Both the position numbers and the translations under genes were made by a program. Positions 10,201-61,861 of a stretch of 64,000 nt of DNA are shown piece by piece. Location: assembly GCA_038496445.1 (NCBI GenBank), contig JALMLS010000166.1:27275-91274 (forward strand). The letters are read 5' to 3'. The notes beneath the pieces were generated by a model. It was not told where the DNA came from. It made no database searches and saw nothing but the letters and a program-made list of their open reading frames with translations. Source of the stretch: Trichosphaerium sp. ATCC 40318 (lineage: Eukaryota; Protista; Tubulinea). The first letter of the stretch is position 1, and each line of letters opens with the position of its first letter.

Positions 10201-10461
10201 CGGGTGCTGACGTTGAGGTTGTGTTTGAAACTGTCCTCCGCCTACCGTAGGTGTATACGCTTGAGGTGCCATTTGGGCATTTGTAGGTGGTACAGCACCA
10301 ACACCAACAGCAGGAAATGTAGGCGCTGTGGCGGCAATACCTGGCGCAGGGGTAATAGGTTGTGTTGGAGCGCCATAATTTGGTGTAAACGTTGTTGGAT
10401 TGACTGGGGCTGCCCCAGTGTTTGCTGGGGTTGACATGGATGGATAGACGCGTCTAGACAT
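7202..10461 (-). CDS. SEC24: COPII coat subunit Sec24 (multi-exon)
   Basis: Pro/Gln-rich N-terminus, zinc finger RCRRCRAYINPY..WTCSFC, trunk domain YFFVIDVSY, TRQTAWEAVMRVRAS, IQTALLYT...RRIR, gelsolin-like C-terminus. Confidence 0.96.
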
Positions 10462-10918
10462 TTTTTGCGACACGTAGAATGCTACGTTGACAAGCTGAAA
10501 GAACTTAACGTAAACTTAAAGCAATTAGCAATTAAGTTAATGTGCCCAAAAAAAACCTTGTTGTTGCAGGTACAACTCTTCAAAACCGGCAACCGGTAAC
10601 GCCCCAATAAACAAGGAGCACCCTAAATGGACATATAAAAAAATAGGCTTAACAACTGTGGTTGTGCACGTGTTTTTATCCAGAAAAATGATGTCTGTTT
10701 GAAATTGTTCTTTTTTTTTTATTTCATTCTAGGACACGACGCCAAGCGCTACGATCTACTTTTTAGTGATTGTATTACGTGCGCTTGGCATCAGGTACTA
10801 TAGTACAAGATTTACCACAGGTATTAAAGACCTGTGGAAGGCGTCTCGAGACGGTATATTTTTTTTTTTTTGAAAGGTAAAAATGTTCTGTATCGCTTTG
10901 TTCAAAAAAAAATCATTC

Positions 10919-15756: not shown

Positions 15757-16060
15757 AGCAAGGGGCAAACACAACTTAAAACCCTTGGTTCACCTGCTTC
15801 CATTGTAGCGATTTGATAATCTCTCAGTACACATATATACTCATGTTAAGACTTACGAAACTGGAAAGCGCTGGTGCAGTTTCTAAGTAACGAAAGACTA
15901 ATAAACCACGGTGTTCTAGTGCTCACCGTTAGTCACCACAGAGATCCTTCAGAATTTTCTCTCATTTACAAATACAATTTCCTGACATGTCGACAACCCT
16001 GGAGCTGGAAAGCGCTGGTGCAGCTCCTAAAATAGTCGAGGACTTATAACCGGTATTCTG
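15757..16060. repeat. Dispersed non-coding repeat with an internal duplication; inverted copy at 61862-62013
   Basis: GGGGCAAACACAACTTAAAACCCTTGGTT...CTGGAAAGCGCTGGTGCAG (occurs twice, ~15861 and ~16005)...GACTTATAACCGGTATTCTG matches the reverse complement of 61862-62013. Confidence 0.85.
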
Positions 16061-16720
16061 GTGCATACCGTAGTCCTAAATGGAGTATGTGTTGTGGATC
16101 ATCGTTTCGTTATTTTTTGTTTCTCAAACTTACAAAATCTTGTTTTCAGGATGGTCACTGCTTTTGACTCTTTTCAACAAGCCTATCAAGTATATATGAA
16201 CAAAAGAATAGCCAAGACAATCAATGAAGATAATTAAGTAAACTACAGGTGTACTGTGAAGTGTGGCCAGTTGTTTTTGAAGGAATTCCCATATTCGTAC
16301 TTCAATCCGTTTGACATGCATAGCTTATAGTTGTTTCTCAAGCCTTTGTTCAATAGAATACGGAAGCAATCGTAGGCTATTCCATTGTAGAAGGATAGGC
16401 TTTCTTGACTGCACGTGCGAAACTGTTCTCTGAACTCTGTCATGGATTGTACCCTTACTCTGTTTTTCACGTACCACTAAACGGGATATTGGTGCGTAAC
16501 GGTCGCAACTGGTCGAGTCTGTCTCAAAAAAGTTCAACAAATACCAAAAAACTGAGTCAATGGGTTTCTGTGCTGAGCGAATATTCTTTGCGCACATCAA
16601 AAGAAGTTGTAAAGAAAACACACAGAATGACATCTAGCACAGAAAGCGGCTTGAATGACAGGTATAAAAGTTAATTAACATCTTAATCGTTCTAAAAACT
16701 ATGATTTAAGCACTAAAACA

Positions 16721-18289
16721 ATGTTATTGGGCATGCCTATCGAGATTTTATCGACTATTATGAGCTATACAACAACTGGTCGATTTGCAGTTTGTCAAAC
16801 ATGCCATCTCCTTTCATCTATCATTCACGATATCATCGGTTACGATAGTGTCAGAATAACGACATCTGAACAAGCTCTTCAAGTTTTAACACACCAAGGC
16901 ATAATGAAACACACAGCAATTACGTTAGTTGGTAATGAAGAAACCGGGTTCCCTTCCAACAATCTCGTCGAACAATTCGCAGGAGTTCATACCATAAAAC
17001 TCGATTCTTGCAGACACATCACATATAAAAGCATAAAAGCTCTTTCAGGTGTTCACACCATCGACTTTTGTCGTACTTCAGTTACAGATGAGTGTGTTAA
17101 AGCACTCAAAGGTGTTCATACTATCAATCTCGCTTATTTGAGGAGTATAACAGATGCAAGTGTTGCAACACTTGCAGGAGTTCATACCATAAACCTGGAT
17201 ATAACACGTGTAACAGATAAAAGTATTAAAGCACTCAAAGGTGTCCATACTATTCATCTTGATGATACTAGTGTTACAGATGAAGGCATTGGGTTTCTTA
17301 AGGGAGTTCATACTATTTACTTAAATGGCACTGATGTAACAGATAAAGGATTGAAAGTTCTTGGCAGTGCTGGAGTACATGCCATTCAACTTAATGCAAC
17401 CAAAGTGACAGATGAGGGTATAAGTGCACTCAAAGGTGTTCATACTGTCTCTCTCGGCCATACATCAGTTACCGATGAAGGCATTAAAGCACTCAAAGGT
17501 GTTCATACTATCGACCTCAGTAGTACATCAGTTACAGATGAAGGCATTAAAGCGCTCAAAGGTGTTCATACTATTGACCTCAGTAGTACATCAGTTACAG
17601 ATGAAGGCATTAAAGCGCTCAAAGGTGTTCATACTATCGACCTCAGTAGTACATCAATTACAGATGAAGGCATTAAAGCGCTCAAAGGTGTTCATACTAT
17701 CTGGCTCACCCATACATCAGTTACAGATGAAGGCATTAAAGCGCTCAAAGGTGTTCATACTATCGACCTTGGGTACACTATGGTATCAGATGAAGCAATC
17801 AAAAGTCTTAATGGTGTGCACACAATAGACATTGCTGCTTGTGATAACATAACTATTGAAGGAATAAAAGCGCTGAAAGGAGCACATACGATTACCATAA
17901 GTGGTTCTAGTGATAAGGGAATATATGACAGAGAAAAAAATAAATGGTTTCCAGAGTTCAATGGGGAAGGTATGAAAGACGAATGGCTTCAACACCTTTC
18001 TGATACAAACACACTGTTTATTATTAATGGTCAAAATGCGTTTACTGATGATGGAATCAAAGCATTGACAAATGTCAAAGTACTTGTTCTGTATGAGTGC
18101 AATGCAATAACAGGTGATGGGTTTTCAACATTAGTCAACCTTGAACAAATCACTTTGACTCGTTGTTCTGAAATAACAGATTCGGGCTTGAAACGCTTGC
18201 ACTCTGTGAAGCGTATTAATGTGAGGAATTGTAGACATATTACAAAAGAGGGTGTTAAGGCAATGGGAGGTAGATGTACCTACAGGTAA
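16721..18289 (+). CDS. Intronless F-box-like + leucine-rich repeat protein
   Basis: N-terminal MPIEILSTIMSY; many units of GVHTIDLxxTxVTDEGIKALK. Confidence 0.9.
   Translation: MLLGMPIEILSTIMSYTTTGRFAVCQTCHLLSSIIHDIIGYDSVRITTSEQALQVLTHQGIMKHTAITLVGNEETGFPSNNLVEQFAGVHTIKLDSCRHITYKSIKALSGVHTIDFCRTSVTDECVKALKGVHTINLAYLRSITDASVATLAGVHTINLDITRVTDKSIKALKGVHTIHLDDTSVTDEGIGFLKGVHTIYLNGTDVTDKGLKVLGSAGVHAIQLNATKVTDEGISALKGVHTVSLGHTSVTDEGIKALKGVHTIDLSSTSVTDEGIKALKGVHTIDLSSTSVTDEGIKALKGVHTIDLSSTSITDEGIKALKGVHTIWLTHTSVTDEGIKALKGVHTIDLGYTMVSDEAIKSLNGVHTIDIAACDNITIEGIKALKGAHTITISGSSDKGIYDREKNKWFPEFNGEGMKDEWLQHLSDTNTLFIINGQNAFTDDGIKALTNVKVLVLYECNAITGDGFSTLVNLEQITLTRCSEITDSGLKRLHSVKRINVRNCRHITKEGVKAMGGRCTYR
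17461..17770 (+). repeat. About five near-identical 63-bp coding tandem repeats (21-aa LRR units)
   Basis: TACATCAGTTACAGATGAAGGCATTAAAGCGCTCAAAGGTGTTCATACTAT recurs with 63-bp period. Confidence 0.9.
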
Positions 18290-18844: not shown

Positions 18845-19805
18845 TTATAGCTCTACACATTCTAAACGAAAGCTATGTTGAGCTAATACACCATCTAGGT
18901 TCCAACTTTTATATTCGCCTTTTGATATACCTTTAACATAGAAACAATGGATTCTTAACTGCCCATTACGATACCAAACTTTATACTCTCCATGCTTTAA
19001 TCTGTCTTTAAAATAGCAGTGTTCTTCAAGTTGACCAGTTTCAAACCAACGCTTATACTCGCCATGAATAACACTAGTAGTCTTATTATAGTATGGTTTA
19101 CGATGATTTTTTGCACGTGGTATATAACCAGGTGTATCAACAAAACACTTGTAGGAATACTTGGCTTTCATTAAGCCATATCGGTATAACATATAGTCTC
19201 CTTCAAGCTCACCCTTGTTAAACCAACAGTGCTTTCTTAGATTACCTGAATCATCATATTTCTTATACTCTCCATGGTATAGTTGAAATCTATGGACATT
19301 TTCATGGCAACAACCTGTGTTCATTGCAAAACAATGGACAACAAGTTGATTGGTTTTTTTTTTAATTTTCTTGCACTCTCCACAAATCCTTCCTTCCTTC
19401 ATTTGATAACTATCAATGAACTCTTGGCTATAAACGGTCAATAACCCGTCTTTTTGACCTTGTTTGTAAAAGCAAGACTCTAGAATCTGTCCATCACGCA
19501 CTGAGTAAGTCAAAAATTCACCATTCTTTCTACCTTTCTTTGTTGTAAACTCCTGTTGTTCTCAATGATCCATTTGCTTGAAAAACCAAGAATCTGCCAT
19601 GTTTTACGCCCTGTTTGTAGAACCCTTCCTTGTATTTAGCTCCAGATGGGTACCATTTACGGTAGTGATAGAGATAGCCTTTGTTTCTTCTTTTACCATG
19701 TCTGTTGTACCGTTCGACCGCTAATTGGCCATTTGGGTGCCATTTACGCTCCCAACCAGCTGTGGTACCATTTTTGAACTTGGTTTCAACATGTTTCGCT
19801 CCATC
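18845..19805 (-). pseudogene. 3' part of a transposon-split F-box-MORN (MORN-variant/YwqK-like) gene
   Basis: KHVETKFKNG..GWERKWHPNGQL...HGEYKRWFETGQLEEHCYF repeats; one apparent extra A near 19535; the 5' part lies at 35891-36109. Confidence 0.88.
19797..19805. repeat. Left 9-bp target-site duplication CGCTCCATC
   Basis: Identical 9-mer at 35891-35899. Confidence 0.9.
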
Positions 19806-19893
19806 GGAACAGTGTATTCTCAGAAAATTCCGACTGAAAAATTCCGAAAAAATAGAAATGTTCCGAATTTGTTCGACAAAAAAAAATAAGCGT

Positions 19894-20216
19894 TTATTTG
19901 TTACAGTTGTGGTTCATCGATTTTTTGTTGTCATCCACAGTTTTAATAGCTTCTGTTACTTGTGGCAAGTCAATTAAACCATCATTTTCTTGTCCATTTT
20001 GTGCCGCTTGTTTGAAAATAGCTCCCATTCTTGCTATAAAACCTGCGCGTAGTGTTGGGTGCTCGTTTGGTATAATACCTAGCTCACTACAATAGCCTTC
20101 GAACAATTCATTCAATGCGTCTGTTGGTAGTACATTAGGCTCCTATGCGTTTATATTAGTTTATAACTACAATAAGCGCAAATACATACATTATCGCTGT
20201 TTTGGTGGTCGGACAT
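19894..20216 (-). CDS. Small hypothetical protein (2 exons), cargo of the MULE
   Basis: MSDHQNSDN|EPNVLPTDALNELFEGYCSELG... with a GT-AG intron; no recognisable family. Confidence 0.45.
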
Positions 20217-20344
20217 GTATGCTGCGTTGTGTGGTAGTGTTTGTAAAGTAATGTCTTTTTGGCGGCAAACGCTTTTATTTACTTAACTTAAACACATAAG
20301 TAATGCCAAATAAATTATTTTGAACTTTATTGTTACACGCGCTT

Positions 20345-21800
20345 GTAAATTTACAACTTGAACAACATTTTGAGCGAATGGAGGTACAACCTCTCACCTA
20401 CCATTTCTACAGTGACTTTGTGAAGGACAACTGCCTTCAGTGTTACCGCAAACGTCAGGTCCCATTCTTTGGTTCCACATTATTGATCACAAGGAACACA
20501 TTGAGCGCTCTTACATTCATTAAGTCTTGTACAGAATCCATATACTCTTACAAGACAGTTACTACAAAGTTGGATTTTGTAAGGTGTACCTGTAATAGGC
20601 TTTGAAAAATCGCGTTTATCCTCGATGGTGGACTCTTTGGTATCAAAAATAATGGACACTCAGAATGTAACCAGCGTGTGGTGGCTCACCTACGGACCTT
20701 GTAAATCGAGCGCTCATGAAATAAATAAATGAAGCGGAAGAAAAAAAATTCTGAAACGCACCTGTAGCTATTTGGTACGCGTACAGTCTATATTGTGTAT
20801 GAGATAAGCCGTTTAAGAATTAAAAGCGTACTGTATCCCAACTTGTTACCAAAAGAATGTCATTGTTGCCAGTAGCGAAGCATACCTCTGAGATGCTATC
20901 TACCTACCAATGGCATTTAGGTCAAATCATCATTACAACAATTAAAATATTTCCGTACCTCTGCGGGCGCAACAGCAAGTTCAAATTCTTGACTCATTTC
21001 TCAAGATGCCATACACAATTTTTCGAAATAAACTACAAAAACACAGTGTACACAACACCTACCTTCATAAACGTGATACGCATACACATGTTACCCTTCA
21101 ATTCACATGAACCACCAGAATTGAAAGTAGCGGTCCATACTGAGCGCTAATGATTGTTCCTACTAGAAAAATTAGACAATTGGAACAAAACAGATGTTGT
21201 ACAACCAGAATGGAGCAGGTTTTTGTTTTGTTTTTTTTCAATTCAAAACTTTGCTTGCGTACATTCTGGAATGCTGAACATGTACTGGTACAACATAACC
21301 CTTGAGAAGTGTCATCACAACCATGTTCATTTTCAATCGTACCATTACCACAAATAGCTAGAGGAAGGTTAGTATGTTATGGAAAAAGTTTTGAGTTGTT
21401 TTCCCATTAAAAACAGATATCATATTTCTTCAACGTACAGGTACAAACTCCATCGAAACATGCGGCAGATTGTCCAACATTATTCATGTCAATACAAGAA
21501 GTATTATCTGGTAGATTAACCATCTGACAGATGCCATCTAAGCCCAACGGTAAATGAAAGGTGTATATCGAATTTTCGTTCTGAAAACGTGCTTCTGTTG
21601 TGACTTACTTATACATGCTTCAATGCACGGATCGACATCACTGTCTTCTATACAACTACAGTCTAACCTGAATCCGGAATTGCATACTTCATTCTAAGAG
21701 GAACAAGGTCAAAAAAAGAAAAAGGTGATAAATCAACGCACTTGTGTCTAGCTCGGTGCACTTGTCACCATCGTCACAGCTCATTCTGTTTGAAACAGAT
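20345..21800 (-). pseudogene. Degenerate multi-exon fragment of a Cys-rich (EGF-like)/FN3-like extracellular protein, MULE cargo
   Basis: Exons DDGDKCTELD, NEVCNSG..CSC, DGICQMVNLPDNTSC...CFDGVCTC, LSHTQYRLYAYQIAT; frameshifts present. Confidence 0.5.
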
Positions 21801-22045
21801 ACCCGCATACATGCCACCATTATTAGGATCACTGAATTACTGTTTAACTGTAACAACACATCATTAGGATTAATTACACAGGTATTTCAGCTTGCCTCTT
21901 TTCTAAACGCGTTTAGAAGTGTATACTCGTACATAACAGACAAGCATTGTTTTAGAAAACAAACAAAAAGATAAGGTGAAATTTCAAATGATGTGAACGG
22001 TGTATAAGTAAAGTGTTGTTCATAAGTTTTGATTAAATAGGATTA

Positions 22046-24210
22046 CATGCCTGGAATTGATGCTTCAGTAGCGGCACTGAGCCGATGTCTTCAAGGCTGG
22101 GACAGTAACAGTCAATAAGTATGTGAAGTTTTTCTTCAAAGAACTAAGTTAAAGACGTACTTTGTGTCAACTCCGTCTCAGAGTTTACGATTTGTATTCG
22201 CTAGTTACCAGCATCTACAATGACTGTATAGTTACTGACAGGGTTGTCAGCTAAACCCAAGGGACCACTGAATTCCTACAACTGTTTGTCAATCGCTGAA
22301 AAAACGTTGTGACGTTTCAAAAAAGTAATTTAATGACTGATCACACATGAATAATACAGATAATTCTTTTACGAAAAACCACGTACAGCTTTTCCTGAGC
22401 CTGCCTTTCTTCGGTATTGTGCGTAAAAATCACCTTTGGGAAGTAAGAAAATATGTGTTGTTGTAACGAAAAAACATACCAAATCTATCGAAAACCTTGA
22501 CGGCACTGGCACCAAAATCTGTCACCCAAAAGTAATTGTTTCTTGAAGATGTTGTAACATATGTAGAGTCATCAAACTCTTCACTTACAACAGACTGAAA
22601 CGTAGCTAAAGAAATATAAGTGACACTACGTGAAGAAAGAATAACAATCTTTTTTATACCTGCAGTACTGTTTACTTTCCATATCTTGACTAGCTTGTTT
22701 CCCCTATCTACAACTATCAATTGCCTAATAGAATAAGTCTAAATACAGAATGAGGTTACACACTCAAAGTTTTCCATATAAGCAACACCAGTAGGGTCTC
22801 TTAGTTGGTCTTTAATTACATTAAAAAAAACTGCAAAGCCACTCAGTAGTACATACTCTTATCGATTCCAAATGATCCAAATGTGTAACATACATCGAAT
22901 GAAGTAGCGTTTAATGCTGATGGTTACCACTATCTGATACAAACAGAATACCATATTTTTTACTCACAGCAACACCCTACGCAAGAACAAAAAAATTAAC
23001 AAAACATGATCTTTTTTTCAAAAAAAGCACATGTACTTTTGGAGATATGAACTGCCCAAGTGATGCACCCAATGAACCAACATGTGCTGTTAAATTCTCT
23101 AAGTGTACGTAAGAATACAATAAAGCACATTTTGAGTAATTGTCGGTTTTTTCGCATGCCTCTTGCGTAAGCAATTTGAATTCTGTGGTTTTTAGTGTCA
23201 GAAACAAAAATGATGTAGGTGACGTTATCATATAGAGCAGCTATGCTTTGAGAAAACGCAAGGGAGCCTGTCTCATTGCCTAGTGTACCAAATTCGTGTA
23301 TGTATGCGCCTGGGAGTAATTGTTAAGCGTTTTAAAGCTTTCTGAAAAACACACGCTAAATTACGTTTACAACGCACTGTATAAATCTAGTACTTGTACT
23401 CTGTCGCTCAAAGTATCAGCTACAGCGATTCTAGAGCGTAAGACGTTACGAAAGTTTTGTGCTACACATGAAATACGTACCGGTTTGTAGTTATGTTCGT
23501 TGTACTGGCAAATACACTAAAATACGTGACATCATGCGGGAGGTTAAACTGTTCTTTTCTGTCCCCTCTGTTGCCAAAATGCCTGTCAGAATTATATGTC
23601 TGAGCGCCTTGAGTGTATTAGCGCTGTAGCTTGAGTTTGCTCTTTGATAACCTTGTTGAAAGCTTCAGCACTTTCAGTAAATTGAACACACAATGTGTCG
23701 TTGATTTGTTGGCGCTCAAGTTCACTTTGTATCTTCTGTTTATGTTCATCAGCATTTGCAAGACAAGCTTTCCATCTAACAGAAAGAGGTTATTAACAAT
23801 GTAAACAAGAAAAAAAGTTGAAAAAACGCACCTTTGTGAGAGCTTCAATGTCAGATTATTTGGCGACATCAGCGAGCTGAGCAGCAAGACCTTGAAGAGC
23901 TTCCAAGTTACCCTTTTGCTCAGGTATTGAGTTTGAGAAAGTCCCAAAGTCAGCCTAAGAAAGAAGATATGTTACTACAAAGTATAGGGCTTATCAAGGT
24001 AAAAAAAAATAAGATGTGCCTTCAACTTTCTGGCATCATCGACTGTGTCGACGTTAATACCTTCTGTCAAGACGTCTTCAGTATTTTCAAGCCTACACTG
24101 AACTTTTGACCCTAGGAATACCATTTACACAAGAACGTTGGTACTGAAATACCATGTAACGAAAAAAATAATGGTTTTTTTGACGTTTTGTTGAAAAAAA
24201 AAACTTACCT
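22046..24210 (-). pseudogene. Degenerate multi-exon NHL-repeat (beta-propeller) gene, MULE cargo
   Basis: FGNRGDRKEQFNLPHDV, IAVADTLSDRVQV, LGQFISPK, QLRDPTGVAY, IVVDRGNKLVKIW, EFSGPLGLA..IVDAGN*RIQI (in-frame TAG near 22201). Confidence 0.75.
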
Positions 24211-25449
24211 TTGCAAGTACTCAATGTTCAATTACTCGTTCTTGGCATTGTGTTCCTTTCAGCCTTATGTTGTGCAGCACGCTCAATCATTGCTTATCAT
24301 CAAAAGCACTGAGCAAGTTCTTTACTGAACTAGAACCATTTACTCGTCTTCTGCCAAATTTTGCATTAGCGTCTGCGCCGCCTTTAATTCACGTAGTATC
24401 GTAAGTGTCAAATGGCAAAGGTATTTTGACTTGATTGAGTTAAGTGATAGCGTAGAGTGCTTATTAGAGAAGATGCCCATTGACTCCATCTCAGATGTCA
24501 AGGCAGCAAGTTCATCAACCTCGGTTTGGATCTCAGCGCCATCTTTGTATACCTCCTGAAGCGAATATTAGAGAGGTACGATGCCAACAAACAAGAAACA
24601 AAAGGGGTTTTTTCGAAACAAGGACATACGTTGCCAGCAGCAATACGCTCACCAGGTTCACCATCACACTACACAGGATTAAATATTTTGGTAAATATTT
24701 AAAATAAATAGCCATGCAAGAATTTTTATGCGAGGCAAATAGTAACTACTAAAAAATAAATAAAAAAGCACGTGTGTTTACTTTTTGTGGATACATCTCT
24801 AGTGTTTTAAATAATCACGTGATTTAAATCCAAATAACTCCAAAACAAAAATCAAAAAAATACTTTTTTACTAACAGTGGAAACAAGTACCTTGCACGCT
24901 ATTGTAATGATAGCGCTCATAGTCTTTGGCCATTTCACACTATCAAAATATAGTATTCTACATTTTTAGCTTCTGGATAAGCGGCTGCAATCAATTTAGG
25001 AGCATCTACCCTCCGTAAGCGTTACATTTTTGAAATAGAAAAAAAATCTGAAGCTTGCTGCAAAATATACAAACACTTCCTACTGTACCAATGATCTTTA
25101 ATGTAACGTCAAGGCCGCTTAGTTTTTCAATAACATTTCTTTCAACCTTTACTAACCGAATATCACACTGTATGATATTATCAGCCATAAGCTTAGCGTC
25201 CAAAGACTCGATAGTGTTACCAGCAGTCTTAACAGGCGCTGATTTCTCCCAAAAAAAAATAATATTTGCTTGTTCGCAAGCTTTGTTTCAAACCTGTTGG
25301 TTCTTTTGCCAGGAGCTAGTTGATGTATTTTGGCCTACATATGTTGCACCAGGATCACGGCTAAAGTTATTATGACGTCAACTTTATATATTGCTAAAAA
25401 ATCACAAAAATATATTTCAGAAAAAAAAAAAAGTTCGTTATCGGTACCT

Positions 25450-27050
25450 GACAATCAATAGCATAACCTTGTGTTCCGTTTTGAGGTGTAAAAGTACCAC
25501 CAAAAGTGACATGGGCTCCTTGGAACACATACTTCATGCCCTCTGTACGAAGACGTTAAAACAAACATTGAACAACGTTTGTACTTGAACCAACTTAGTA
25601 AACCGGCTTGCATGTTTTTAACATCAGTCAATCCTTTGAGTAAGAACAGAGTCTCCACCACCAACATAGTAAGTCTCAAGTGTGTACTTGAGAGCAAAAA
25701 GAGCAGCATAAGCAGAAAAGTTGTTTCGTTTGATACGTTAGTTGCCTCATCAGGATCAGTTGGGAACATTTGTGTTCCTATGGGTAGGTAGTTAGTTTAA
25801 GATGATATGGATAGTTAATGTGTACCAAGTGGACAATGATATAGAGAACTAAGTTTTGTTGCAAGAGCCTTCATGGCTGGTAAGATACTCAAAGCGAGTT
25901 GGACTTCAGCTGGAGCTTTATCAAATGTCTCAAACTTGGTAATATTCAAGCATTCTCTCAAATACATCACTTGAAGAGGTCCCAAAATAGCACTCCATAC
26001 GTTTTCTCCAGTAATAGGTTTACTAAGAGAACATTAAAAAAAGAAAAATTCGTTTTGTTGTCGTAACAACTTAAATCCAATAAAGACGCAACCAGTCATT
26101 CCAATGAACCATACCGAAGATTCCAAGGTGTAGTGGTATCATTATTAGGTCCTGGTGGAGGAACTTTCCACATCCAACCTTTCTGCAGTGAGAAAAAGAA
26201 AAGTACAAAAAAATCACGTGTTTTTTAATACTTACCGTAGTCACCGCTTACTGGGTCGTGCATCGCCTATTTTGGACCTATCATACGATAAAAGTAACCA
26301 CCGCCAACTTTTCTTTCTGCGACTTGGTCACAACATTCACCACAACACGTTGGATCTTGTAGTTTTACCTGTAATGAAAAAAAAAGGGTAAGGTGACAAT
26401 TAGTGTTAACTTTACTATCAAAAAAAAAAGACTTGTGTAAAAACAAAAACTTACGTGTGACATGTTCCCTGGTAGTTTTACTGATGCCAAGGCGCCCCCA
26501 GATATTTTACTTGCACCATACTTATACCTATAAAAGAGAAAAAAGGGTAAGTCTTTGCCACCCTTTTTTCTTCAAAAACGGACAAAATGCTACCTGAGGC
26601 AATGGCTCTAATTTGAATTAATCCACCAGCTTGTGCGTTAGCACCTGTAGTAGATTGATAAAGGCTGGAGCGAAGGTAAAGCTCAACCTATTTTTGTCAA
26701 CCAACTTTTTTGGGCAATTGTTAAAAATACGAACCAATCCTGCGTATCCTTCAAGAGCAAGGGCTACACTCCATACACCACCATCATATAAATTCAAACC
26801 GACGTTAGTCAATGTACGTTCTTGTTGAGCAATAGCAGAATCGAATGGTAGCATGTTACCGAAAGGATCAAAGGCACTATACGAAGTTAACTTCTGAAAA
26901 TAATTGGACATTTCTTTAAACTATTGCAAAATGAAGTACTTCACTTTGTTTTTATTTTTATCTAGTAAAAATATATGCGCACCGGAAGCAAGGTATGTTG
27001 GAGAATACCAGAATGATCTACCAGTGCATGGTATCACGTCATTGTAACTC
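25450..27050 (-). pseudogene. Degenerate fragment of a secreted glycosidase-like protein (tGLP1-like family from memory), MULE cargo
   Basis: Motifs GLNLYDGGVWSVALAL, GYFYRMIGPK, WNDW|KPITGENVWSAILGPLQ, VSNE; frameshifts present. The family assignment is recalled, not searched. Confidence 0.5.
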
Positions 27051-27124
27051 TTTGGCATGCCATCCTTAATAAAGGCAATGAGACATTGTATTATAATATC
27101 ACATGAGCAATCATTAAATGCTTT

Positions 27125-27462
27125 GACACTAGGCTCCATAATGTCCCTATTACGAAAGTTAGCGCCAATATTAAAGCGAGTAAACAACTAGGTACCAAGC
27201 ATATTCCCACCATGTTAAGCGTGTGAAAATTAGAAATTGACCACAAAGAACACCGAGACCACCCCACGCCTACAAGGGCGATCAATAAATCTCTACTTCT
27301 AAAAGTGCTGATATGTACCAAATAGCAGCAAATCGGGATGCCGTAGCACGCAATCTTTGATACTCTTCGTGCGTAGGTTTCAATTCCTCCTCAAGTTGCT
27401 TGTATCGTATTTTTTTGTCTGAGAGAAAAGTATACCTTGTGGATTTACAGTCATGTTGACCT
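27125..27462 (-). pseudogene. MCU: Captured fragment of the mitochondrial calcium uniporter gene, MULE cargo
   Basis: Coiled coil KQLEEELKPTHEEYQRL, then WGGLGVLCGQFLIFTRLTWWEYAW|DIMEP (MCU pore signature WDIMEP across a GT-AG intron); similarity stops right after DIMEP. Confidence 0.8.
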
Positions 27463-27969
27463 ATAACAAGCACGTGAGCATAGAGGAATATCAAAAGGAA
27501 AAAGCAAGAGAGGAGATGTTTTTATGAAAAGAACGTACGTATTTATCATTTGTCTCAAGCTCATAGTCGCAGGCCTGATACGTGTACAGGCATTGTGTAC
27601 CTAGGATACGAATACTGTTAGTTTTACAAATTTTAACTTGCTCATGCCAGTCATAGCGTTAAGAATTTTTTCTTGTTGTTTTAGGTACAACTGTACCGCG
27701 TATTGAGCTTTCTTCCGCTTAGCCATTACCCTAAGATTGTTTAACGCGCATCTAAAATTTTTTTACACCAAATAGACAATTGTAAAACGCACTGTCTTTT
27801 TTGCGTAGTATTAAGGCGTTTGCGCATAGCCATGCAACGAAGGGCCGCTTTTACTTTATTTGCTGGCAAAGATAAAATGCTGTTGATTTGGAGGAATACC
27901 GCTGTTGATCTGGAGAAATACCAAGCTCTCAGCTACTTCTAAAGCCAACTTGGGTTTTTCTAATAAGTT

Positions 27970-30853
27970 TTAACACAAACTACAACGACTGCATAGTCTC
28001 CAACCCAATAACAAACAGACATGCTTCAGCTTTAACAGGCAATATAGATTTGTCTCCTACCAAAGTTGGAGGTAAAATCAACTCGCCTTACAAGCCACCT
28101 ACTAGAATGTCTCCTCCACCTTCTCCTATGAGGTATGATAGAGACTATAGAAAGGCTCTAAAGCATCCAATTGTTCGTACTGTTGCTGATAAGGTACGCA
28201 TCAACAAAGGTTTTCTGCACTAAATAATTATTTAGTTATCTGAAGCCATGGAAATTAGAGGTATGTTATTGAAAGACTTTGGAGATGCATATTTTGACTA
28301 TGTTGTGGAAAACCACGAAATTATGGACAATGTAGATTACGAGTTGTTGGTGAAAACCTTGTTCTCTCCGTGGGAAATACAGTACGTTCAATTTTTTTAT
28401 TTATTTTTTTTTCTAATATTTTACTTAGTATGCTCAAATTTCTTTTGAGTTATCATCAATTGTATCCCCACCTGGATCAGCTAGGTCCTAAAACAGCTTC
28501 GTATATCAGATTTCTGATTCAAACGCATCTTGGTGATTTACCATTCCGTTGGGTTACTCCACACAGTCCTGAATAATTATGTTGTAGGCAATCCTTTAAC
28601 ATGTAGTTCTGAAACGTACGAGCAACTATATAATAAAATATTTGTCGTTCAATTGATATTGCTTTCTTAGCTCTTACAACTGATCACAACCTCATTTTGA
28701 TTATCTTAATGTGTTAGTGAGCCTACTTTGGATACCAAAGGAAGCATTAATGTTGTTTGAGCTTGCAAGTAATGGCTTTGGTTGTACTTTTTCTAATTTT
28801 ATTTTTGACTATTGTACCACTTTTGTATTACAACTTCTTCCTTAACCAGCTCTTACAACTGATCACAACCTCATTTTGATTATCTTAATGTGTTAGTGAG
28901 CTTACTTTGGATACCAAAGGAAGCATTAACGTTGTTTGAGCTTGTAAGTAATGGTTTTGGTTGTATTTTTTCTACTTTTATTTTTGATTGTTCGTGTTTT
29001 TGTATTACAGCTTACTTTGCTCATTTTCTACTGATCACAACTGCATTTTGATTATCTTAATGTGTTAGTGAGCTTACTTTGGATACCAAAGAAAGCATTA
29101 ACATCGATTTTGAGCTTAGTAGTTGTTTGTAATTTATTTTTTTACCTTACATAATTATTTCTATCTCTGTCTTGGTTTCTTATTGAATTGTAGTTCAAAT
29201 CCATCGTCTAAAAAGAAGATAGATTATAGAAAGTATGAACTGTTACATATTTTTGACGATAAAACAGATGAAGAGGTTGACACTTTTTTTGACTCTTTAT
29301 CTGATGCTAATAAACGTCTGGTTCTTAGAAACTTGGTATCTACTTTGTTTTATATAATTAATAGCACCTTAATTATTATCTTGTAGAACAACCAATTACT
29401 TTGGAGAAAGCATCCGGTGGCTTGTCATTTTTTTACAAAAAAACAAATAACGTATTTGGAGCGAAAATATAAATGGTTATATTGGTACCTAGTTTTGTCT
29501 TAATGGGTTGTTTTTCCTTGCCATAATAGTAATATTTAGCAACTTATATGCCAATGATGCTGATTATAAGACAAGGAAAACTAAAAGTGCTAAAACTGGA
29601 AAACGTGACTTTTTGCGTTGGGTACACGGATTTTAATGTTATTTCTACATTCCAATTATATTTTTTAGGCACATTTGCAGATGGCCGTTTATTTACGTCG
29701 TAACATGTCATTGACATATCCTCCTGAAACTTCTTTGATTGACCAAAACCCCAGAGGCGATAAAATAGCTGATGCTGTAATGTTCGACAAACATTATCCC
29801 ATTTGTACATATGGATATGGCGATTACAAGGCATATAAGTACTAACAAGTTAAAATGTGTCAAAATGTGTCAAACTAATTTGAGTTTAGAAATTCTACGT
29901 TGCAAATAATTTCAGTTGGATACAATGGGTCTTTTAGAGACAATATCTTATGTAGTGATGATGATTTATTTATGGACGGCGTTGTATCTGTTGAGGAGTC
30001 AAAACACATGATTAATTTGGCACATAATTATTTTAAACCAGTACGCACTATTATCGTACGTTGCGTTATCATTCACTATTATTTAGATGTTGAGCTTGGT
30101 AGCCGAACATCCAGAAAAAACCTTTAAAAAACTTTGGCACGATTTGTTTGGCCATTATTACTATAGCAAGGTTAGTTTAGTGTTAGATAGTCTAAATTGC
30201 AGCTATTACGGAAAAGTCGGAATGAAACATACGTGTTTACATGTAGATCTACTTTGTTCTTATGCAACTGCACCACATTGGGGTGGAGGAGGATTTGGTA
30301 GCAAGAATACTCCAGCTGCAAAGGCTGCCAAAAAAATGTTTACTCCAGAAATATTAGCATTAAAGAAAAAATGGAAAAGTACGTCCAAAAATGAGGTTTG
30401 TACATTTTAATAAGGTTAGTTACATCCAAAAAATACACTGCTGAACGATTTTCTTTGTTGGGCCGTCATAGAATAATTGAATTGGAGCCTCATGTTATGA
30501 TTTGTAACTTGGATAGCGCATATTTTGTACACTTGCCAGGCCAACACGAAGATTATCCGTGGACAATATTCAAAAGAGTACTTAGTTTCCGTATTGTTAT
30601 TGTTAAACGTTCTACTCACTATTTGTAGATTCAAAAACAAAAAGCGGCTATAGACATACATTGGTGCGTAATCCATTGGCCTAAATTGTGTAATGGACAA
30701 ACTCACTACTGTATTGTGTTTGCTACACCTCCTGTTCAAAATCCTTTTGGTCTTTTACAAGAAATTGAAATTGTAGCATTGGGCGTAGAACTTAGGAAAA
30801 AAGTGGATGAAGTCATGGCACAGTTGTATCCCAATGTGCGTTCACATATTTAA
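27970..30853 (+). CDS. Multi-exon hypothetical gene (possibly decayed) inside the MULE, co-oriented with the transposase
   Basis: Series of GT-AG-bounded coding exons (e.g. MEIRGMLLKDFGDAYF, YATAPHWGGGGFG, IIELEPHVMICNLD, ending ...YPNVRSHI*); no family recognised. Confidence 0.45.
28671..29120. repeat. About 2.5 copies of a ~179-bp tandem repeat
   Basis: ACTGATCACAAC..CATTTTGATTATCTTAATGTGTTAGTGAGC.TACTTTGGATACCAAAG recurs at ~28679, ~28858 and ~29030. Confidence 0.9.
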
Positions 30854-30982
30854 TATGGCTTAAATTAATATTTTTAGACTAAATATTAATCTTGGTAAAA
30901 AAAGCTCACAAAGACTGTTAACGACTTAAATAATAAATTCTTGTTGTATCTAAATTACATTACACGTTATGTATTAATTCTT

Positions 30983-33900
30983 ATGGCAAAAAAAGGTTAT
31001 GTAACCAATGGACCCAACTCACACAGTGATACAGACACTACAACATTGTTTTGGCGTGATTTGTTTGATCGTCCCATAACTTTTGCTCACGGCACACAAT
31101 ACGGTTGTCAATGGACAGTGAACAAAAGGAAACATATCAACAAAAAGTACGTACCAAATCCACCTACATTTTGTAGCATTGTAGCTTGTAGCGTTGTAGC
31201 GCACTGTTAGTAATTAGTGCAAATAGAAATACCAAAGGTGGCCAGACAAAAATTGATGCCAACAACAAAAATGTCAACAACAATGACGTCAATGACATCA
31301 ACAACAATGATATAGCAACTAGAGTGTATTGTAAATGTACGATAGTTTCTAACTGCTCCGGTACGTTTGTTTTGTTGTATAATACGATAACTGTTGTTGA
31401 TATTCATTACAGCTAAAGTGAACTTTGCGATTGATGCACGTGGAACAATAGTTTCAATTCGCAACACAGAAAAACACGCTCCAAATTGTTTACCTCAAAA
31501 CAGCATTGATTTTAGACTTAGCGAGTCCACAAAACGCAAAGTACAAGATTACCTTTTAAGTGGTAAAACTCCTGAATTAGTGGTGCGTTCAAATGTGGTT
31601 GGTCATGCTACAATAAATTAAAATCTATTTGTATAACTAAACTTTTTGTTTGTTAGGCGTTAAACATGGTTAAAAATAGTGACAAAACGCTTTTAACTTT
31701 GGCAAATAGTTCTATTACACCTAGAGTAGACCAAATTCGAGCTGTGGCGCGCAAACTTAAAAAAGAGTCCCCATACAGCGACTTGGGAGTGCTTAGTACA
31801 ATCAGAGCAAAATATCCCGAAATCAACATTTGTTTGAAGCCGTTTGTGATTTCTAAATTTAATGAAGAGGTTTTGACAAATAAAAACAAAAAATACTTGC
31901 TACGTAAAACATTATTTCTTGACGGAGTACACAACATGGCAGACTTTAAAGAACACGTACGTAACAATATTTCTAAACCCAATTTAGTACGTTGTTTAAC
32001 TTTTTATTAAGTTGTTGTTCTTTTGGAGTATATGTGACAAAGACACTGTTAAAGTGGGCTATGCATTGATGTTAGGGAAAACATTGGAGGAGTACAGATA
32101 TGCATGCGTTGCGTTGGTCAACAAAAATTTCAAAAAATTCAACAGAATTGTTGTGGATTGTGAATTGAATTTAAGGTACCATTGGATATTAAATCTGTTG
32201 ACACATACTAATTTGTATTTACTTTACAGATATGCCCTATTAGAGCTATTTTCAGATATACAAGTCACTTTATGCAAGTTTCACGTTGCTAAAGCACACA
32301 AAGAAAAACGAAAGAAATTAAAATTGTCAACATCTGATATGCTTTGGTGTCGTAATTTTAGCATGTTGCTTTTAGACGCTCAAAGCAGAGAGTTATTTGT
32401 TGAAATATGGAACCTTGCAAAACAAGAGGTACACAGATGTACTCAAATTAGTGCTGACATTTTTTAGGTATCCGAATTGAAAAAAAAAAAAAAAAATTGG
32501 CAAAAAAAGGCCACTTATATGGCATACTTGTATAAAACTTGGGTTTCAAAAAAGGCTACACACCCTCCTGAACTTTGGTCTGCTTACAGTGTAATTGATG
32601 ACGAAGAATACATGGAAAACAGAACTAATAATAGATCTGAAGGCAACAATAAAAGATTTAAAGATAGTTGTGCTGGAGTACGTGCTATGCATTTAATATT
32701 TTCTAACCAGCTTTTTTAAAGACAGGAATACAGTGTAGAACGGATAAGCTGGTCGAATTATTAGAAGAGTTTCAATTTTACAACGTTTTTAAAGCTATAC
32801 AATGTACGTGCTGAATATTTGTGTTCATTTCTAATAATATTTCTAGCTAATAGAAGCACAACACACCACGATTACCACAACCAATCGCGACTACTTGTTA
32901 GAGTAGGTAAAGAACAAGACGCTCAAAAACTGCTAGATCACTGGCGTCAAAATTATGAAAACAAATGCAAAACTTCAAATGTTCCTGTGTATAAAAACCG
33001 TCCAGTGTTGGCAACGGAAAACAATGACTTACACAATGTTGCTGTTAATTACAATGATGAAAAAGAAGGTGAGAATAAAACCAACGATAGAGATGCTTTA
33101 CAAGTTTCAGATAATGGAGCAGACTCAAACGAATGTGATACGTATGTACCTTTCTTTTTTTTTCCCCCCCAATTCTTTGTTAGCTCTGCAGATTCCATTG
33201 ACGTAAGTGACGGTATGCCTTTACCTACAACAAAGTATTTGATGAATGTGGTCCAAAACATAGAATTAAAAAAAAGGCTTGCAAACGATGGCAATTTTGG
33301 TGATACGTAAGTACAAACATTTTCTATATTGTAAATCTTACAATAATAATAGTGCTTTTGAACGATTGAAGTCTCCTACTCCTATAAAACAATCCAAAAG
33401 CCTACAAGTGTTTACATCACCTACTCGTTCTCTTGAAAATAATAGCTCTATCAATACTTCTGAGAATACTTGTGAGAATACTTCTGAAGGTTTTATATAT
33501 CCTGAAGAGTTGAGTATGCCAAAATTGGATTTCTGGGACCAATATGTGTTTGATCTTTGTCGGTAAATATTTAATTATAGTTCTTTGTGATTTATTAAGT
33601 TTAGAAATCAAACGGCAAAGGTATGGCATGGGTTTTTAGTGTCTACATATCCTTGGTATAAAAACTTGCTACAAAAAAGAAAAGAATTTAGAGAAAGAGG
33701 AACATATACGATGGACAAACCACAAACCAATTTGAATGAATTGTTCAACGACAATAATGTTGCCAACAAAGCAATAGATGACAATACTACTAATGTAATA
33801 GATGATGCTAAAATTTACAGTGTTAACAACGTTGACGATACGAGGTACTGTATTTTTATTTTTTTTGTGACAATGTAATTGATTCTAACAAAGTTGCTTT

Positions 33901-35760
33901 AAGTTGTGATACAAAGTTTGATGACGATCATGTTGCCAAAATTGCCAGAGACTTAGCTGAGGTGGATAATTTGATGGACGTTGATAATGAAGTTTCTATC
34001 GATGCAACGCCTTTCATGCATTCAACTCCTGCTTCTTTTCAAAGACGCCACCAAGATATTAATAAGTCCAACACAAAGCCAAAAACAACACGAAAGCCAA
34101 TATTAATAGATCTCACCTCAGATAGTTCACCAAACAACTTTCCAATACAACGAACACCACATGTTTTAAGGCAAAACATGCCAGGACAAGGTAACATTCC
34201 CAAGGCATTAGCTGAGGTGCGTTAACAATCAACTACTATGATTTTGTTAAGACGAATTTAGGATAAAAAAAGAATAAGAAGAGAAGCAAAACTACAACGT
34301 GCTGGCAAAAAACTACAACCAAAGAAACGTGCCAGCAAAAAACTACAACCAAAGAAACGTGTAAAAGTAATCAAGCCAAAAAAACAAAAATCAACCATTC
34401 AAAGGTACTAACAATATCCACTGATTGTTTAATGACTTTGTTAGTCCAATTTCTTCTCGATTAAAGCCACGTAAAGCTACTAAAATGAACACTAAAAAGA
34501 TTGCGAAGCAAGCAGTAGAGTTTGACAGTGATGCCGTTGTAGCAGTTGGTGCTACAGGGCTGAAACTAAACAAGGCTTTGCCTTAAATATGAAGGCATTT
34601 TTTTAAAATCAGGCATTGATGGCAAAAATCAGGCATACAAAAATGGCAATGCCTGATTTTGCAAAGGCAATGGCAACAAAGGCAAAAATCAGGCATTGAA
34701 ATAAGGCTTTGTTGGGCAATGCCTTAATTGTTGCAATGCCTTGTTTTTTTTAGGCAATGCCTGCCCTAGTTTTTTTATGCATTGCCAGCCTTAAATTTAC
34801 AGGCACCAATTAGGCAATGGTTGTGTACACATTGTACATTAAGGATACATTGGTTTAAGGTAAGTCTCCACCACACCAACACTTTCTAAACATTTTTTTT
34901 TATTTACTACTGACGTTTTATATAGACGATGTCACCACGCGCTTAGTATTTTATGGATTCTAACGAAACCACCGCCATTCGAACCGCAGCACCCAAATCC
35001 ACCTACAACAGTAGTACAGGTACGTTAAACCATTTTTCCAGTCCGCGAAAATTATACCAATAATTTGTTAATTTTTTTTTTAAGCTAAAGGTTTTTTTTC
35101 ACATGGAGGACATTGCAGTTTTTTGTGTTTTGTGTACTGTACTTTAATAAATGAATCACTATTGTATGCCTATATAAAGCCTTGTTTTATGAGTATATGG
35201 TGCCTGGGTTATGCCCAAAAATTGAGGGCAAAAATGCCTTATTGTTGCACAAAAAATGAGGCATTATTGGACCAACAATGCAGGCTATTTTAAGGCTAAT
35301 TAGTGAACCAGTTGCTTGCTATTTGGCCCAAATATGAGGCTCCAAAGCCCAAAATTACAAGGCAATGCCTCATATTTGCTCATTTTTTTTGGCAAAAACA
35401 AGGCAATTTGGTGAAAAATAAGGCTGTATTTGGTGGCAAAAAAATGGCTTTTGTAAAAAAAGCCTTATTTAGTTTCAGCCCTGTAGCACAGGAAATCCGT
35501 TAGTCAAAATCGGAGATACTGTATCTGTTTTTTGGACTGAAGCAGAAGACTGGTATCCAGGAACTGTTCTCAAGTATTCTAAAAGAAAGGATGAATATGA
35601 AATCGAGTACAATGACTCTAAAGACCACCCTGAAGGAGGAGTTATTGAAAAGTTTGATGCTGACATATGGCATTTACTCGAACATAAAGACATTTGCAAA
35701 TGTTATGGTTGCCAACTCGAAACAATCAAACGTAGAAACAATAACAACCCCTTGGTATAA
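30983..35760 (+). CDS. Mutator/MULE DDE transposase with N-terminal WRKY/FLYWCH-like zinc finger and C-terminal Tudor domain; interrupted by a MITE
   Basis: CKCTIVSNCS|AKV...EKHAPNC; LFLDGVH (D1); IVVDCELNLR|YALLELF..IQVTLCKFH (D2 + CxxH); YLYKTWV; RTNNRSEGNN (E); after the MITE, VKIGDTVSVFWTEAEDWYPGTVLKY...YEIEYND. Confidence 0.85.
34555..35483. mobile_element. 929-bp non-autonomous TIR element (MITE, Tc1/mariner-type TA TSD) nested in the transposase gene
   Basis: TIRs CAGGGCTGAAACTAAA(C/T)AAGGCTTT; TA at 34553-34554 and 35484-35485; many subterminal AGGCA/TGCCT motifs; removal restores the frame ...VAVGA|STGNPLVKIGD. Confidence 0.92.
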
Positions 35761-35890
35761 TTGTAATTCTGTATCATTAAATAAGATATTTATAGCCTGG
35801 ACTACAAATTCGTAAAAGTCGAAAAAAATCGGAAAATTCTGAAACTTGGACAAGAATATAATCGTAAAATTCTGAGATTACTATGCCTCC

Positions 35891-36109
35891 CGCTCCATCA
35901 GCCATGAATTTTCTAAACGTTCCGTGTTTGTCCATATTTGCGTTAAATCTGCTCGTTTCTGCCGCTTGAAAACAAAGAAGAGGCCAATTGATAAAAGCGT
36001 GATAATCTGTGTTTAAAATCATATGTTGGATCTCTAGTGGTAAACAAAGCAATGTTGAGTCTTGTTTGCGTTCGTTTAAGGAAGATTCACTTGTATTACT
36101 ATCGCTCAT
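35891..36109 (-). pseudogene. 5' part (F-box-like N-terminus) of the split F-box-MORN gene; includes the right TSD 35891-35899
   Basis: LLCLPLEIQHMILNTD..FINWPLL...RF...KHG is homologous to the N-terminus of 53965-54573; joins in frame to 19796 (…MADGA|KHVETKF…). Confidence 0.88.
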
Positions 36110-36670: not shown

Positions 36671-38119
36671 TTACACATGTGACAAATATCGCTTTTTTTG
36701 GCCGCCAAAGTAAACTGTCAAGATTTGGATATGTGAGTGACCAGTTGCCAGTACCAGTTTTCGTACTATTCGTGCATCACCTAAAGCCTTGATGCCTTTT
36801 TTTGTAACATGCATACAACTCGTTATATTGATTGCATATACACCCGCCAGTGCCTTTATGCCATCATCTGTAATATTATTACAGTAGGACACGTCTATCT
36901 CATGAACACCAGCTAAAGCTTTAACCCCTTTGTCTGTTACAAGGGTACAGCGTCTCAACTTAATTGAGTAAACTCCAGCTAGTACTTTAATTCCATCATC
37001 TGTTATCTTAGTACAATCACTCAAGTCAATTGTATGAACGCCTGCCAGTGATTTAATACCATCATCTGTTATCTTAGTACAATTACTCAAGTCAATTTTA
37101 TGAACGCCTGCCAGTGATTTAATAACATCATCTGTCACATTGCAATTCCAGAGACGAATAGTGTGAACGCCACCCAAAGCCTTAATACCAGCATCTGTAA
37201 CTTTTGTACGTGATAGACCAATTGTATGAACACCAGCAAGTGCTTTAACACCTTCATCTGTAACAAGTTTGCAGCCCGATAAATCAATATTGTGAATGCC
37301 AGCAAATGATTTAACACAATCATCTGTAACATTTGTGCTACAAAGATTAATCGTATGAACTCCAGCTACACCTAGTGCTTTGATAGATTCCTCTGTAACC
37401 TTCAAATACCCTAAAGAAATGGTATGAACACGTGCTTGTGCTAGCGCCTTAATACAACCATCTGTTATGTTCCTACAATGACTAATATCAATCGAGTGAA
37501 TGCTTCCTGCAAGTAACAATGTTTTAATACCATCATCTGTAACATCTGTTCCTTGTACATTAAGTGTTTGAACACCAACTAAAGCCTTAATACTGTCATC
37601 TGTGATACGCTTGAAACCACCACATTCTCTCAAGTCAATCATATGAACACCGGCTAATGCTTTAACACCTTCATCTGTAACATATGTGTTGCATAATTTA
37701 ATTTTACGTATTCCAGCAAGTTGTTTAAGATGATCATCGGTCACGTTATAACAGTAAGAAAAGTCAATGCCATCAATTACATTAAAGTCTGTAAAATCAA
37801 CTTTTTGGTTAACTTCCTTCAGTTTAAGGGCATAAGCATCTTGTAGGTACTTTAAGTCTTTTTGTTTGATAGTGTAGTCAATGGCAATTGTATGTTTCTT
37901 TATGAGGAATGGGGCTTCCTTGAATAGACGTCTAAGCTTTTTTCTTGTATTCATTCGTATACTTCTCCTGTCGTCATACCCCAAGTGCTGTATCGCGACA
38001 TTGGATAATAATTTAGATGTATGTACTACTGAGCGCATAGATAACACGGAAGCAAACCGTAGAATATGAATAATGACTTCAACGGGGATCTCATCAAAGA
38101 ATGCGCTGTCTGAGTTCAT
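36671..38119 (-). CDS. Intronless F-box + LRR protein
   Basis: Likely start MNSDSAFFDEIPVEVIIHILRF (F-box), then GVHTIDL..C..ITDDGIKAL repeats; close paralogue of 62511+. Confidence 0.9.
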   Translation of the reverse strand: MNSDSAFFDEIPVEVIIHILRFASVLSMRSVVHTSKLLSNVAIQHLGYDDRRSIRMNTRKKLRRLFKEAPFLIKKHTIAIDYTIKQKDLKYLQDAYALKLKEVNQKVDFTDFNVIDGIDFSYCYNVTDDHLKQLAGIRKIKLCNTYVTDEGVKALAGVHMIDLRECGGFKRITDDSIKALVGVQTLNVQGTDVTDDGIKTLLLAGSIHSIDISHCRNITDGCIKALAQARVHTISLGYLKVTEESIKALGVAGVHTINLCSTNVTDDCVKSFAGIHNIDLSGCKLVTDEGVKALAGVHTIGLSRTKVTDAGIKALGGVHTIRLWNCNVTDDVIKSLAGVHKIDLSNCTKITDDGIKSLAGVHTIDLSDCTKITDDGIKVLAGVYSIKLRRCTLVTDKGVKALAGVHEIDVSYCNNITDDGIKALAGVYAINITSCMHVTKKGIKALGDARIVRKLVLATGHSHIQILTVYFGGQKKRYLSHV

Positions 38120-38641
38120 TTTGTGCACCTTAGTACTACAGGTAGCAGGCGATATGCCTAGAAACAACTTCAAGTAAGTGGGAGCGTAACTATAGCCGGC
38201 AAAACTGCGATTGACCAGGGAACCACGTGGTTTTTCTACAAGAAGAAAAAACGAATATTTTGGGAATGATTTTTGGATTTTAGGTTTTTTTACAGTCCCA
38301 CAAGTGATGTGGGGTTTTTTTTTTGTTTGTTTACTTGTTATCACGTGTTGAGTTTTTTTTTTGGAAATACACGTGATGATTAATGTCTCGAACTGGCAAG
38401 CCAGATATCTGGTAAGATTTATATCTTTTTTTTTCGAGTCCCAGATTGGCTCAAAATCGCCCGAGACGAGCCTAGAGTACAGCATATTTTGTGTTTGAGT
38501 AATTTTACATCTAGAAGAATAAAATAAGTACCCACAAAAACAACTAAAAGTTCAAAAAAAAAAACAAAAAATATAAAAGGGTTATGCTGTGTGTGCCGTA
38601 CCTTGTTTACATTTATTTTTTTGAGAAGGCTAAATTCGAGG

Positions 38642-61640: not shown

Positions 61641-61861
61641 GGGTTTGAAACGGTTGGATTCACTGGACAGGCGGGTAGATCACATTTAAAAAAATGACAA
61701 TTTGCAAGATCTGTCAGAAGTGTCAAATCCGTCAGATCGGACAGATCGGGCAGAAACTGGATTTTTTTTGCTAAAAGTCAGTCTGTCTCAAAACTTGAAT
61801 GAAACAGACAATAATAAGACTACTAGTGTTTTTCATGGCGAGTATAAGCGTTGGTTTGATA

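Follow-up and report, generated by a model that had tools for sequence, protein, structure and literature searches.

A 16-kb Mutator-like element with its own transposase and a train of decayed host-gene fragments interrupts an F-box/MORN gene of Trichosphaerium

In a 64,000-nucleotide stretch of the genome of Trichosphaerium sp. ATCC 40318 (the window; assembly GCA_038496445.1, contig JALMLS010000166.1, positions 27,275 to 91,274 of the forward strand), our analysis confirmed a bounded, 16,085-bp Mutator-like element (MULE) that splits a host gene encoding an F-box-like N-terminus and MORN repeats. The right arm of the element carries a nearly intact transposase gene together with a second gene, and the left arm carries a train of decayed fragments of at least 8 host genes. 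The element, its ends and the halves of the interrupted gene lie as follows, in coordinates of the window.

19806–35890, no strand: whole element, 16,085 bp (15,154 bp minus a nested insertion)
19797–19805, no strand: left 9-bp target-site duplication (TSD), identical to 35891–35899
35891–35899, no strand: right 9-bp TSD
19806–19875, plus: left degenerate terminal inverted repeat (TIR), GGA start, TTCCGA-like motifs repeated
35821–35890, minus: right degenerate TIR
35891–36109, minus: N-terminal F-box-like half of the host gene, 41% identity to residues 20–68 of a paralogue (pairwise E 4e-12)
18845–19805, minus: C-terminal half of the host gene with the MORN repeats, a single 4-bp frameshift near 19535–19541, 0 premature stops

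The initial annotation had reported a shared 9-mer at both ends and imperfect inverted repeats starting with GG, and both observations held on re-examination. The duplicated 9-mer, CGCTCCATC, is perfect and has no occurrence in the 64-kb window searched other than those at 19797 and 35891, and both termini begin with GGA and align over ~70 nt at ~70% identity. With the alignment anchored at the TSDs, the TIR scores were matched by 1–4 of 3000 random pairs. A common 9-mer in two random 60-nt windows arose in 1.6% of trials, a figure that does not yet take into account the frame, the collinearity, the TIRs and the MULE transposase inside. MULEs are defined by a TSD of 8–11 bp (PMC6446971), which the 9 bp seen here matches, and the G-starting ends of ~70 bp agree with a definition that allows TIRs of 14–500 bp, or degenerate ones in the non-TIR groups.

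Excision of 19806–35899 in silico brings the F-box and MORN halves together in one frame (...KFMADGA joined to KHVETKF...). The fused product is collinear with the paralogue at 53965–54573, the N-terminal half aligning with residues 20–68 and the C-terminal half, from fused residue 77, with the paralogue from residue 81, confirming the proposed reconstruction and adding to it the 4-bp frameshift in the C-terminal half. A spliced contig from the one public sequencing run that shares words with this region, described below, fits the host flank at 19700–19807 and stops there, which suggests an empty site. Published work describes the Trichosphaerium genome as having 37.7% GC and a mean intron of 75 bp, with F-box and MORN genes enriched among its giant-virus-derived genes (PMC10521059); the GC content, intron sizes and F-box/MORN abundance of the window are consistent with this description.

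F-box/MORN genes form a large family in this genome (PMC10521059), which would favour an assembly artefact or a chance juxtaposition of two paralogue halves. However, a misjoin would not at once produce inverted ends, a perfect duplication of 9 bp and a collinear join in frame, and the transposase frame is kept across 14 homopolymer runs, which makes an artefact extremely unlikely.

The right arm contains the following features.

30983–35760, plus: MULE transposase gene, 16 exon segments, 1043 aa excluding the nested element
35488–35757, plus: Tudor/Agenet-like last exon segment of the transposase (Agenet E 6e-5, PTM_DIR17_Tudor E 0.002)
34555–35483, no strand: nested TIR element, 929 bp, TA-flanked, 31-bp arms 97% complementary
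28107–30889, plus: second gene, ORF2; 3′ part at 29194–30889 with 9 exons, 436 aa and no stop
28669–29164, plus: three ~175-bp tandem repeats in a long ORF2 intron or spacer

With the nested element removed, the transposase is open over 3129 nt without a stop or a frameshift, and all of its introns are canonical. Its motifs follow in order: a zinc-finger-like C-x-C...H-x-x-x-C, the D245 region (FLDG), a D/E position (VVDCE), CKFH, TNNRSEG and the Tudor-like tail. Spliced models were searched for homology with single exons as queries; a Pfam HMM search of single transposase exons did not match the MULE domain, and by Atlas features the catalytic exon is MULE domain PF10551 (score 0.95, 21 of 30 matches). 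Together with the in-frame motifs, this supports the earlier assignment to MULE transposases on DDE, CxxH and TNNxxE grounds, and the element thus has the DDE transposase (PF10551) with CxxH expected of a MULE. Since the frame survives 14 homopolymer runs, base errors do not explain the lesions that we describe below in the left arm. The Agenet match of the last exon reaches 23.8 bits, below the 27-bit curated cut-off. A 25-nt intron in the transposase model was dropped in favour of one of 55 nt.

Reading through into the nested element would stop the transposase after 962 aa, short of the Tudor-like domain, with the catalytic core whole. The nested element has 32 AGGC(A/T) words per kb versus 3.4 in the window and a CpG observed/expected ratio of 0.36 versus ~0.8, with two apparent short introns and a small exon; it may carry its own captured piece.

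The 5′ part of ORF2 (28107–~28500) can join the rest in frame to give a protein of 526–539 aa. By eye we spotted an HVD...H pattern recalling the HxD...H that 2OG-Fe(II) dioxygenases (JmjC, TET/JBP, AlkB) bear on a double-stranded beta-helix fold; exon-wise searches of Pfam, PHROGs, PDB and phage named nothing, a dioxygenase profile included, and a homologue search with one exon, which sees proteins of similar length, came back blank. The structure model of a single exon was unusable (pLDDT 43), and the Atlas matches, all below 0.9 and low-recognition, were discarded. ORF2 looks element-native and not like cargo, and it is probably an accessory gene of the MURB/VANC type belonging to the element itself. 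Its tandem repeats (28669–29164) resemble the motif arrays of VANDAL elements.

Cargo occupies most of the left arm, on the minus strand wherever it is readable.

19894–20216, minus: small two-exon ORF, 91 aa, intact, beside the left end
20590–20665 (approx.), minus: cargo piece, donor unnamed, contig depth 27.4
20830–20995 (approx.), minus: cargo piece, WD40-like, spliced contig depth 21.8
21082–21160, minus: cargo piece of 79 nt from a high-depth transcript, contig depth 860, loose ends on both sides
21260–22100 (approx.), minus: cargo piece with Cys-rich repeats, introns kept, spliced contig depth 44.5, Dicty_CTDC E 0.023
22228–23440 (approx.), minus: cargo piece with NHL repeats, introns kept, 20 differences in 405 nt, NHL E 0.004 and 0.026
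23626–24669, minus: internal piece of a coiled-coil gene, weakly alpha-actinin/spectrin-like, with frameshifting deletions and stops
24333–24390, probably minus: 58-nt piece of another transcript lodged in the actinin-like piece, separate contig, loose ends on both sides
25210–25380 (approx.), minus: cargo piece, donor unnamed, contig depth 38.7
25448–27091, minus: cargo piece of an (alpha/alpha)6-barrel family with a glycoside-hydrolase fold, residues ~100–470 of ~670 aa, introns kept
27100–27750, minus: probable further cargo, exon-like frames beyond the contig-covered stretch

The donors were recognised from spliced contigs of the public run, placed on 19700–25690 at 80% identity. Eleven contigs fit this interval, 0 at ≥99%, 3 at 95–99%, 5 at 90–95% and 3 below 90% identity; 10 of the 11 fit separate cargo stretches, and the remaining one fits the host flank only. 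The cargo contigs skip CT..AC introns that the cargo keeps and extend into sequence absent from the element, so capture took place at the level of DNA, and the captured, intron-containing host DNA of ~8 kb that had been proposed is borne out. None of the contigs bridges two cargo pieces, and at least 8 donors are represented within the 5-kb contig-covered part. The whole train of ~8 kb runs on one strand, with its pieces broken inside exons and introns. Once the donors had appeared as spliced transcripts, an idea of viral or capsid cargo was dropped.

Exon-wise searches of Pfam, PHROGs, PDB and phage left most cargo exons unnamed, and Pfam support for the NHL and Dictyostelium-type Cys repeats is weak; these two pieces (22228–23440 and 21260–22100) may share a common donor. 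The coiled-coil piece covers positions 694–1336 of a 1532-nt contig, with 30 differences in 538 nt; a PDB search gave alpha-actinin-2 (E 0.51), and we presume a resemblance to alpha-actinin that the exon search did not confirm. The best PDB match of the WD40-like piece is a WD40 protein (E=2), and we take this piece to resemble the N-terminus of Bub3, again without confirmation from the exon search. The 79-nt exon matched nothing in Pfam or PDB and presumably resembles capping protein alpha, which exon searches left unconfirmed. No family match was found for the exon-like frames at 27100–27750. The 91-aa ORF has no contig in the run, and its main exon returned no homologue in a search limited to proteins of similar length.

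The glycoside-hydrolase-fold piece is broken by frameshifts and a premature stop, its final ~200 aa are absent, and its donor contig reads into a next exon that is missing from the element; a further frameshift considered at ~26700 was rejected as a 47-nt intron. A model of the ~670-aa donor family gives an (alpha/alpha)6 barrel of glycoside-hydrolase type (pLDDT 87). This family is widespread in protists and present in some bacteria, its main part has no Pfam domain, and the predicted fold makes it a candidate unclassified glycoside hydrolase family.

The pieces share a strand and keep their splice sites, as would be expected if the left arm formed a working chimeric gene, or a cluster of genes, aboard the element. 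Yet premature stops and frameshifts run throughout, and no contig fits at ≥99% or across two pieces, so that we give this reading almost no credence. As the cargo consists of decayed pieces of at least 8 donors, the element, called a gene vehicle in the initial annotation, is not one for working genes. The annotation's picture of genes running outward from a centre near 27.8 kb stands for the strand layout, with the left arm on the minus strand, the right arm on the plus strand and the switch at ~27.8–28.1 kb, but the left-arm 'genes' are fragments.

The state of preservation differs strongly along the element. Where countable, the cargo diverges from the donor contigs by ~5–10%: 74 of 1173 nt differ in the listed pieces (6.3%; 4.9, 5.6 and 10.4% for three pieces), and indels number ~6 per kb, a rough rate that uses aligned lengths estimated from depth bins. 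Decay of the same degree predicts ~7 stops and ~19 indels in the transposase, with 0 and 0 observed (P 0.002 and 7e-9); ~3 stops and ~8 indels in ORF2, with 0 and 0 observed (P 0.03 and 4e-4); and ~3 stops and ~7 indels in the host halves, with 0 and 1 observed (P 0.04 and 0.008). The cargo is thus far more decayed than the transposase, ORF2 and the interrupted host gene, and so, during the decay of the cargo, the right-arm genes either stayed intact or were added late. Because the cargo is more decayed than the gene in which it sits, the unit was most probably already carrying old cargo when it moved. The hexamer CACGTG occurs 45 times outside 19797–35899, where composition predicts 5.9; the left arm has 4 occurrences against 0.94 expected (P 0.016), and the right arm has 1 against 7.5 expected at the host rate (P 0.005). 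This enrichment in the left arm and background level in the right arm fit a host-derived left arm and an element-native right arm.

Taken together, these observations make it likely that a Mutator cut-and-paste element captured cargo that then decayed, and that the loaded unit subsequently inserted into the F-box/MORN gene. Cut-and-paste chemistry is established for MULEs. The transposase would bind the two degenerate ends and excise the unit, which would insert with a 9-bp staggered cut. The left arm would have grown through repeated DNA-level capture of host gene pieces, likely by template switching in the repair of element breaks, a route proposed for Pack-TIR capture (PMC8277862). The cargo would then have decayed without selection while the transposase and ORF2 remained intact, and the presence of these intact genes beside decayed cargo points to continued transposition of the lineage. 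Last, to judge from the decay contrast, the loaded unit of ~15–16 kb would have entered the F-box/MORN gene. At least 8 pieces would fall on one strand by chance with a probability of 2 × 0.5^8, or <1%. A possible explanation, which we tentatively favour, is outward transcription from 27.8–28.1 kb with purging of antisense captures, as these would silence host genes; alternatively, the bias may come from a strand-biased capture mechanism.

Several points weigh against this account. The ends are only ~70% alike and, in an unanchored scan, score 32 against a background of 30–33 without being singled out; we regard them as degenerate TIRs, given that they are significant when anchored at the TSDs and undistinguished otherwise. 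Only a single copy was seen: a second insertion, a junction-spanning long read or an empty-site sequence was not among the data retrieved, and viral and metagenome contigs gave no match for the left end, a transposase exon or ORF2. The cargo divergences from the contigs of the run may include strain difference, and some donors are possibly paralogues. Added to these are the roughness of the indel rate, the three donor names (alpha-actinin, Bub3 and capping protein alpha), which exon searches did not confirm, the lack of a homologue or fold for ORF2, and the exon boundaries, which were picked to keep the frame (all GT..AG, with introns of 39–80 nt).

The unlike ends, at ~70% identity, and the abrupt change in strand, decay and frequency of CACGTG at ~27.8 kb would also be expected of a chimera, in which an old non-autonomous Pack-type left arm was fused recently to an intact autonomous MULE and the hybrid transposed once. 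Maize 'heteromorph' Mu elements exist and transpose (PMC10401008), and a neighbour-fusion model has been put forward for Pack-TYPE elements (PMC8903248). However, no internal remnant of either element end was found in a scan inside the element, and non-TIR MULEs, too, normally have degenerate ends (PMC6446971). We consider a chimera somewhat unlikely; it differs from stepwise capture by the element solely in how the cargo came to lie beside an intact transposase, leaving the final 15–16-kb jump unchanged.

A further possibility is that the cargo arrived in place after the insertion, through gap filling or a nested Helitron-like element, and that the mobile MULE was only ~8 kb long. The pieces all lie on one strand, and same-strand fragment trains are typical of Helitrons. 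Consistent with in-place arrival, a single copy was seen, and transposition-independent gap filling explains most single-copy animal Pack-TIRs (PMC8277862). Nevertheless, decay has gone further in the cargo than in the interrupted host gene, which in-place capture from live genes could not produce, although an old nested element may have arrived late. No second TSD or TIR pair bounds the left arm. Nor does the arm show the 5′ TC, 3′ hairpin plus CTRR and AT insertion of a Helitron: there is no hairpin-plus-CTRR end at its edge, and the two matches fall inside cargo exons. Arrival in place is therefore highly unlikely, and we favour movement of the loaded unit.

Beside the right end of the element lies one of two inverted copies of an F-box/leucine-rich-repeat gene (36797–38407 and 62014–63898), which are 97% identical over 1072 nt and share upstream sequence; judging by this similarity, they are a recent duplication. 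Further members of the same family lie at 16721–18289 and 59171–60232. Two leucine-rich-repeat genes are preceded by short inverted, near-identical segments at 15794–16069 and 61853–61984 (93 nt at 97% and 65 nt at 94%), which may represent the end of a further mobile or duplicated unit. Other genes that appear host-like by eye are Sec24-like (7575–10473, minus), Fcf1/Utp24-like with a PIN domain (43270–43572, minus) and IPT/TIG-like (38764–39069, minus).

Plants, animals and fungi all provide documented cases of gene capture by DNA transposons (PMC6431247, PMC8277862, PMC3538342). The Trichosphaerium element joins a transposase and cargo with exact ends, an exact empty site and pieces of differing divergence from their donors, and it would be a natural MULE able to move 15–16 kb. 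If more copies exist, ordering the captures on a tree would make the capture route of MULEs testable, be it gap filling, template switching with transposition or neighbour fusion. In annotation, fragment trains of this kind will wrongly be called novel chimeric genes. A broader proposal, which we regard as distinctly unlikely, is that of a large autonomous amoebozoan MULE family still moving with multi-kb, strand-ordered fragment trains and equipped with a chromatin kit, namely a Tudor reader and an ORF2 acting as a demethylase-like or VANC-like anti-silencing factor on the tandem repeats.

In our literature searches we found no report of a Pack-MULE-type element in amoebae, and the Trichosphaerium genome paper makes no mention of transposons (no occurrence of 'transpos'; PMC10521059). 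Pack-MULEs, known from rice and other plants (Jiang et al. 2004, summarised in PMC6431247, PMC6446971 and PMC5861414), lack a transposase and are mostly 1–2 kb long, the founding set having no member larger than 7 kb (PMC6431247), in line with the earlier statement that they are small and transposase-free. Like them, the element has MULE ends, a 9-bp TSD, captured fragments (not whole genes) of several host genes with identifiable parents, here known as run transcripts, retained introns indicating DNA-level capture, and a position within a gene. Unlike them, it is 16,085 bp long, encodes a full transposase and is thus not non-autonomous, and has a second gene, short degenerate ends, a protist host and at least 8 donors over ~8 kb on one strand. 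The proposed description as a giant Pack-MULE-type element is therefore apt for the way it works, with captured host fragments and retained introns, but not for its transposase and size; because Pack-MULEs are defined as lacking a transposase, we use the term as a works-like label only.

Among MULEs with a transposase, the VANDAL/KAONASHI non-TIR elements of Arabidopsis are similarly autonomous and likewise combine degenerate ends with additional element-native genes and tandem repeats inside the element (PMC13317346, PMC6446971). In contrast to VANDALs, exon-wise searches found no homology of ORF2 to VANB, VANC or Ulp1, and VANDALs have not been described with long trains of decayed host fragments. 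The red-algal Jittery-group MULE-Cc and the SET-bearing MULEs of Phytophthora (PMC6446971, Table 1) resemble the element in coding for a transposase outside land plants and in bearing 'various inserts, potentially host derived', or a chromatin domain. MULE-Cc, however, has long TIRs (192–500 bp) and its donors were not demonstrated, and the present element has a Tudor-like tail in place of SET or SWIM. A Gypsy retroelement of Ectocarpus was called the first transposon with a Tudor domain (PMC12477816). The giant KDZ, EnSpm and Sola-1 transposons of the same alga are likewise DNA transposons of 15–30 kb with accessory genes and fixed nested insertions (PMC12477816), but they belong to other superfamilies and have whole accessory genes as cargo. 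The Pyrenophora hAT transduplication also combines an autonomous element with a captured gene, differing in its superfamily and in its single captured histone gene (PMC3538342). Finally, animal Pack-TIRs would share capture by template switching, but represent other superfamilies with short pieces of median 224 bp (PMC8277862).

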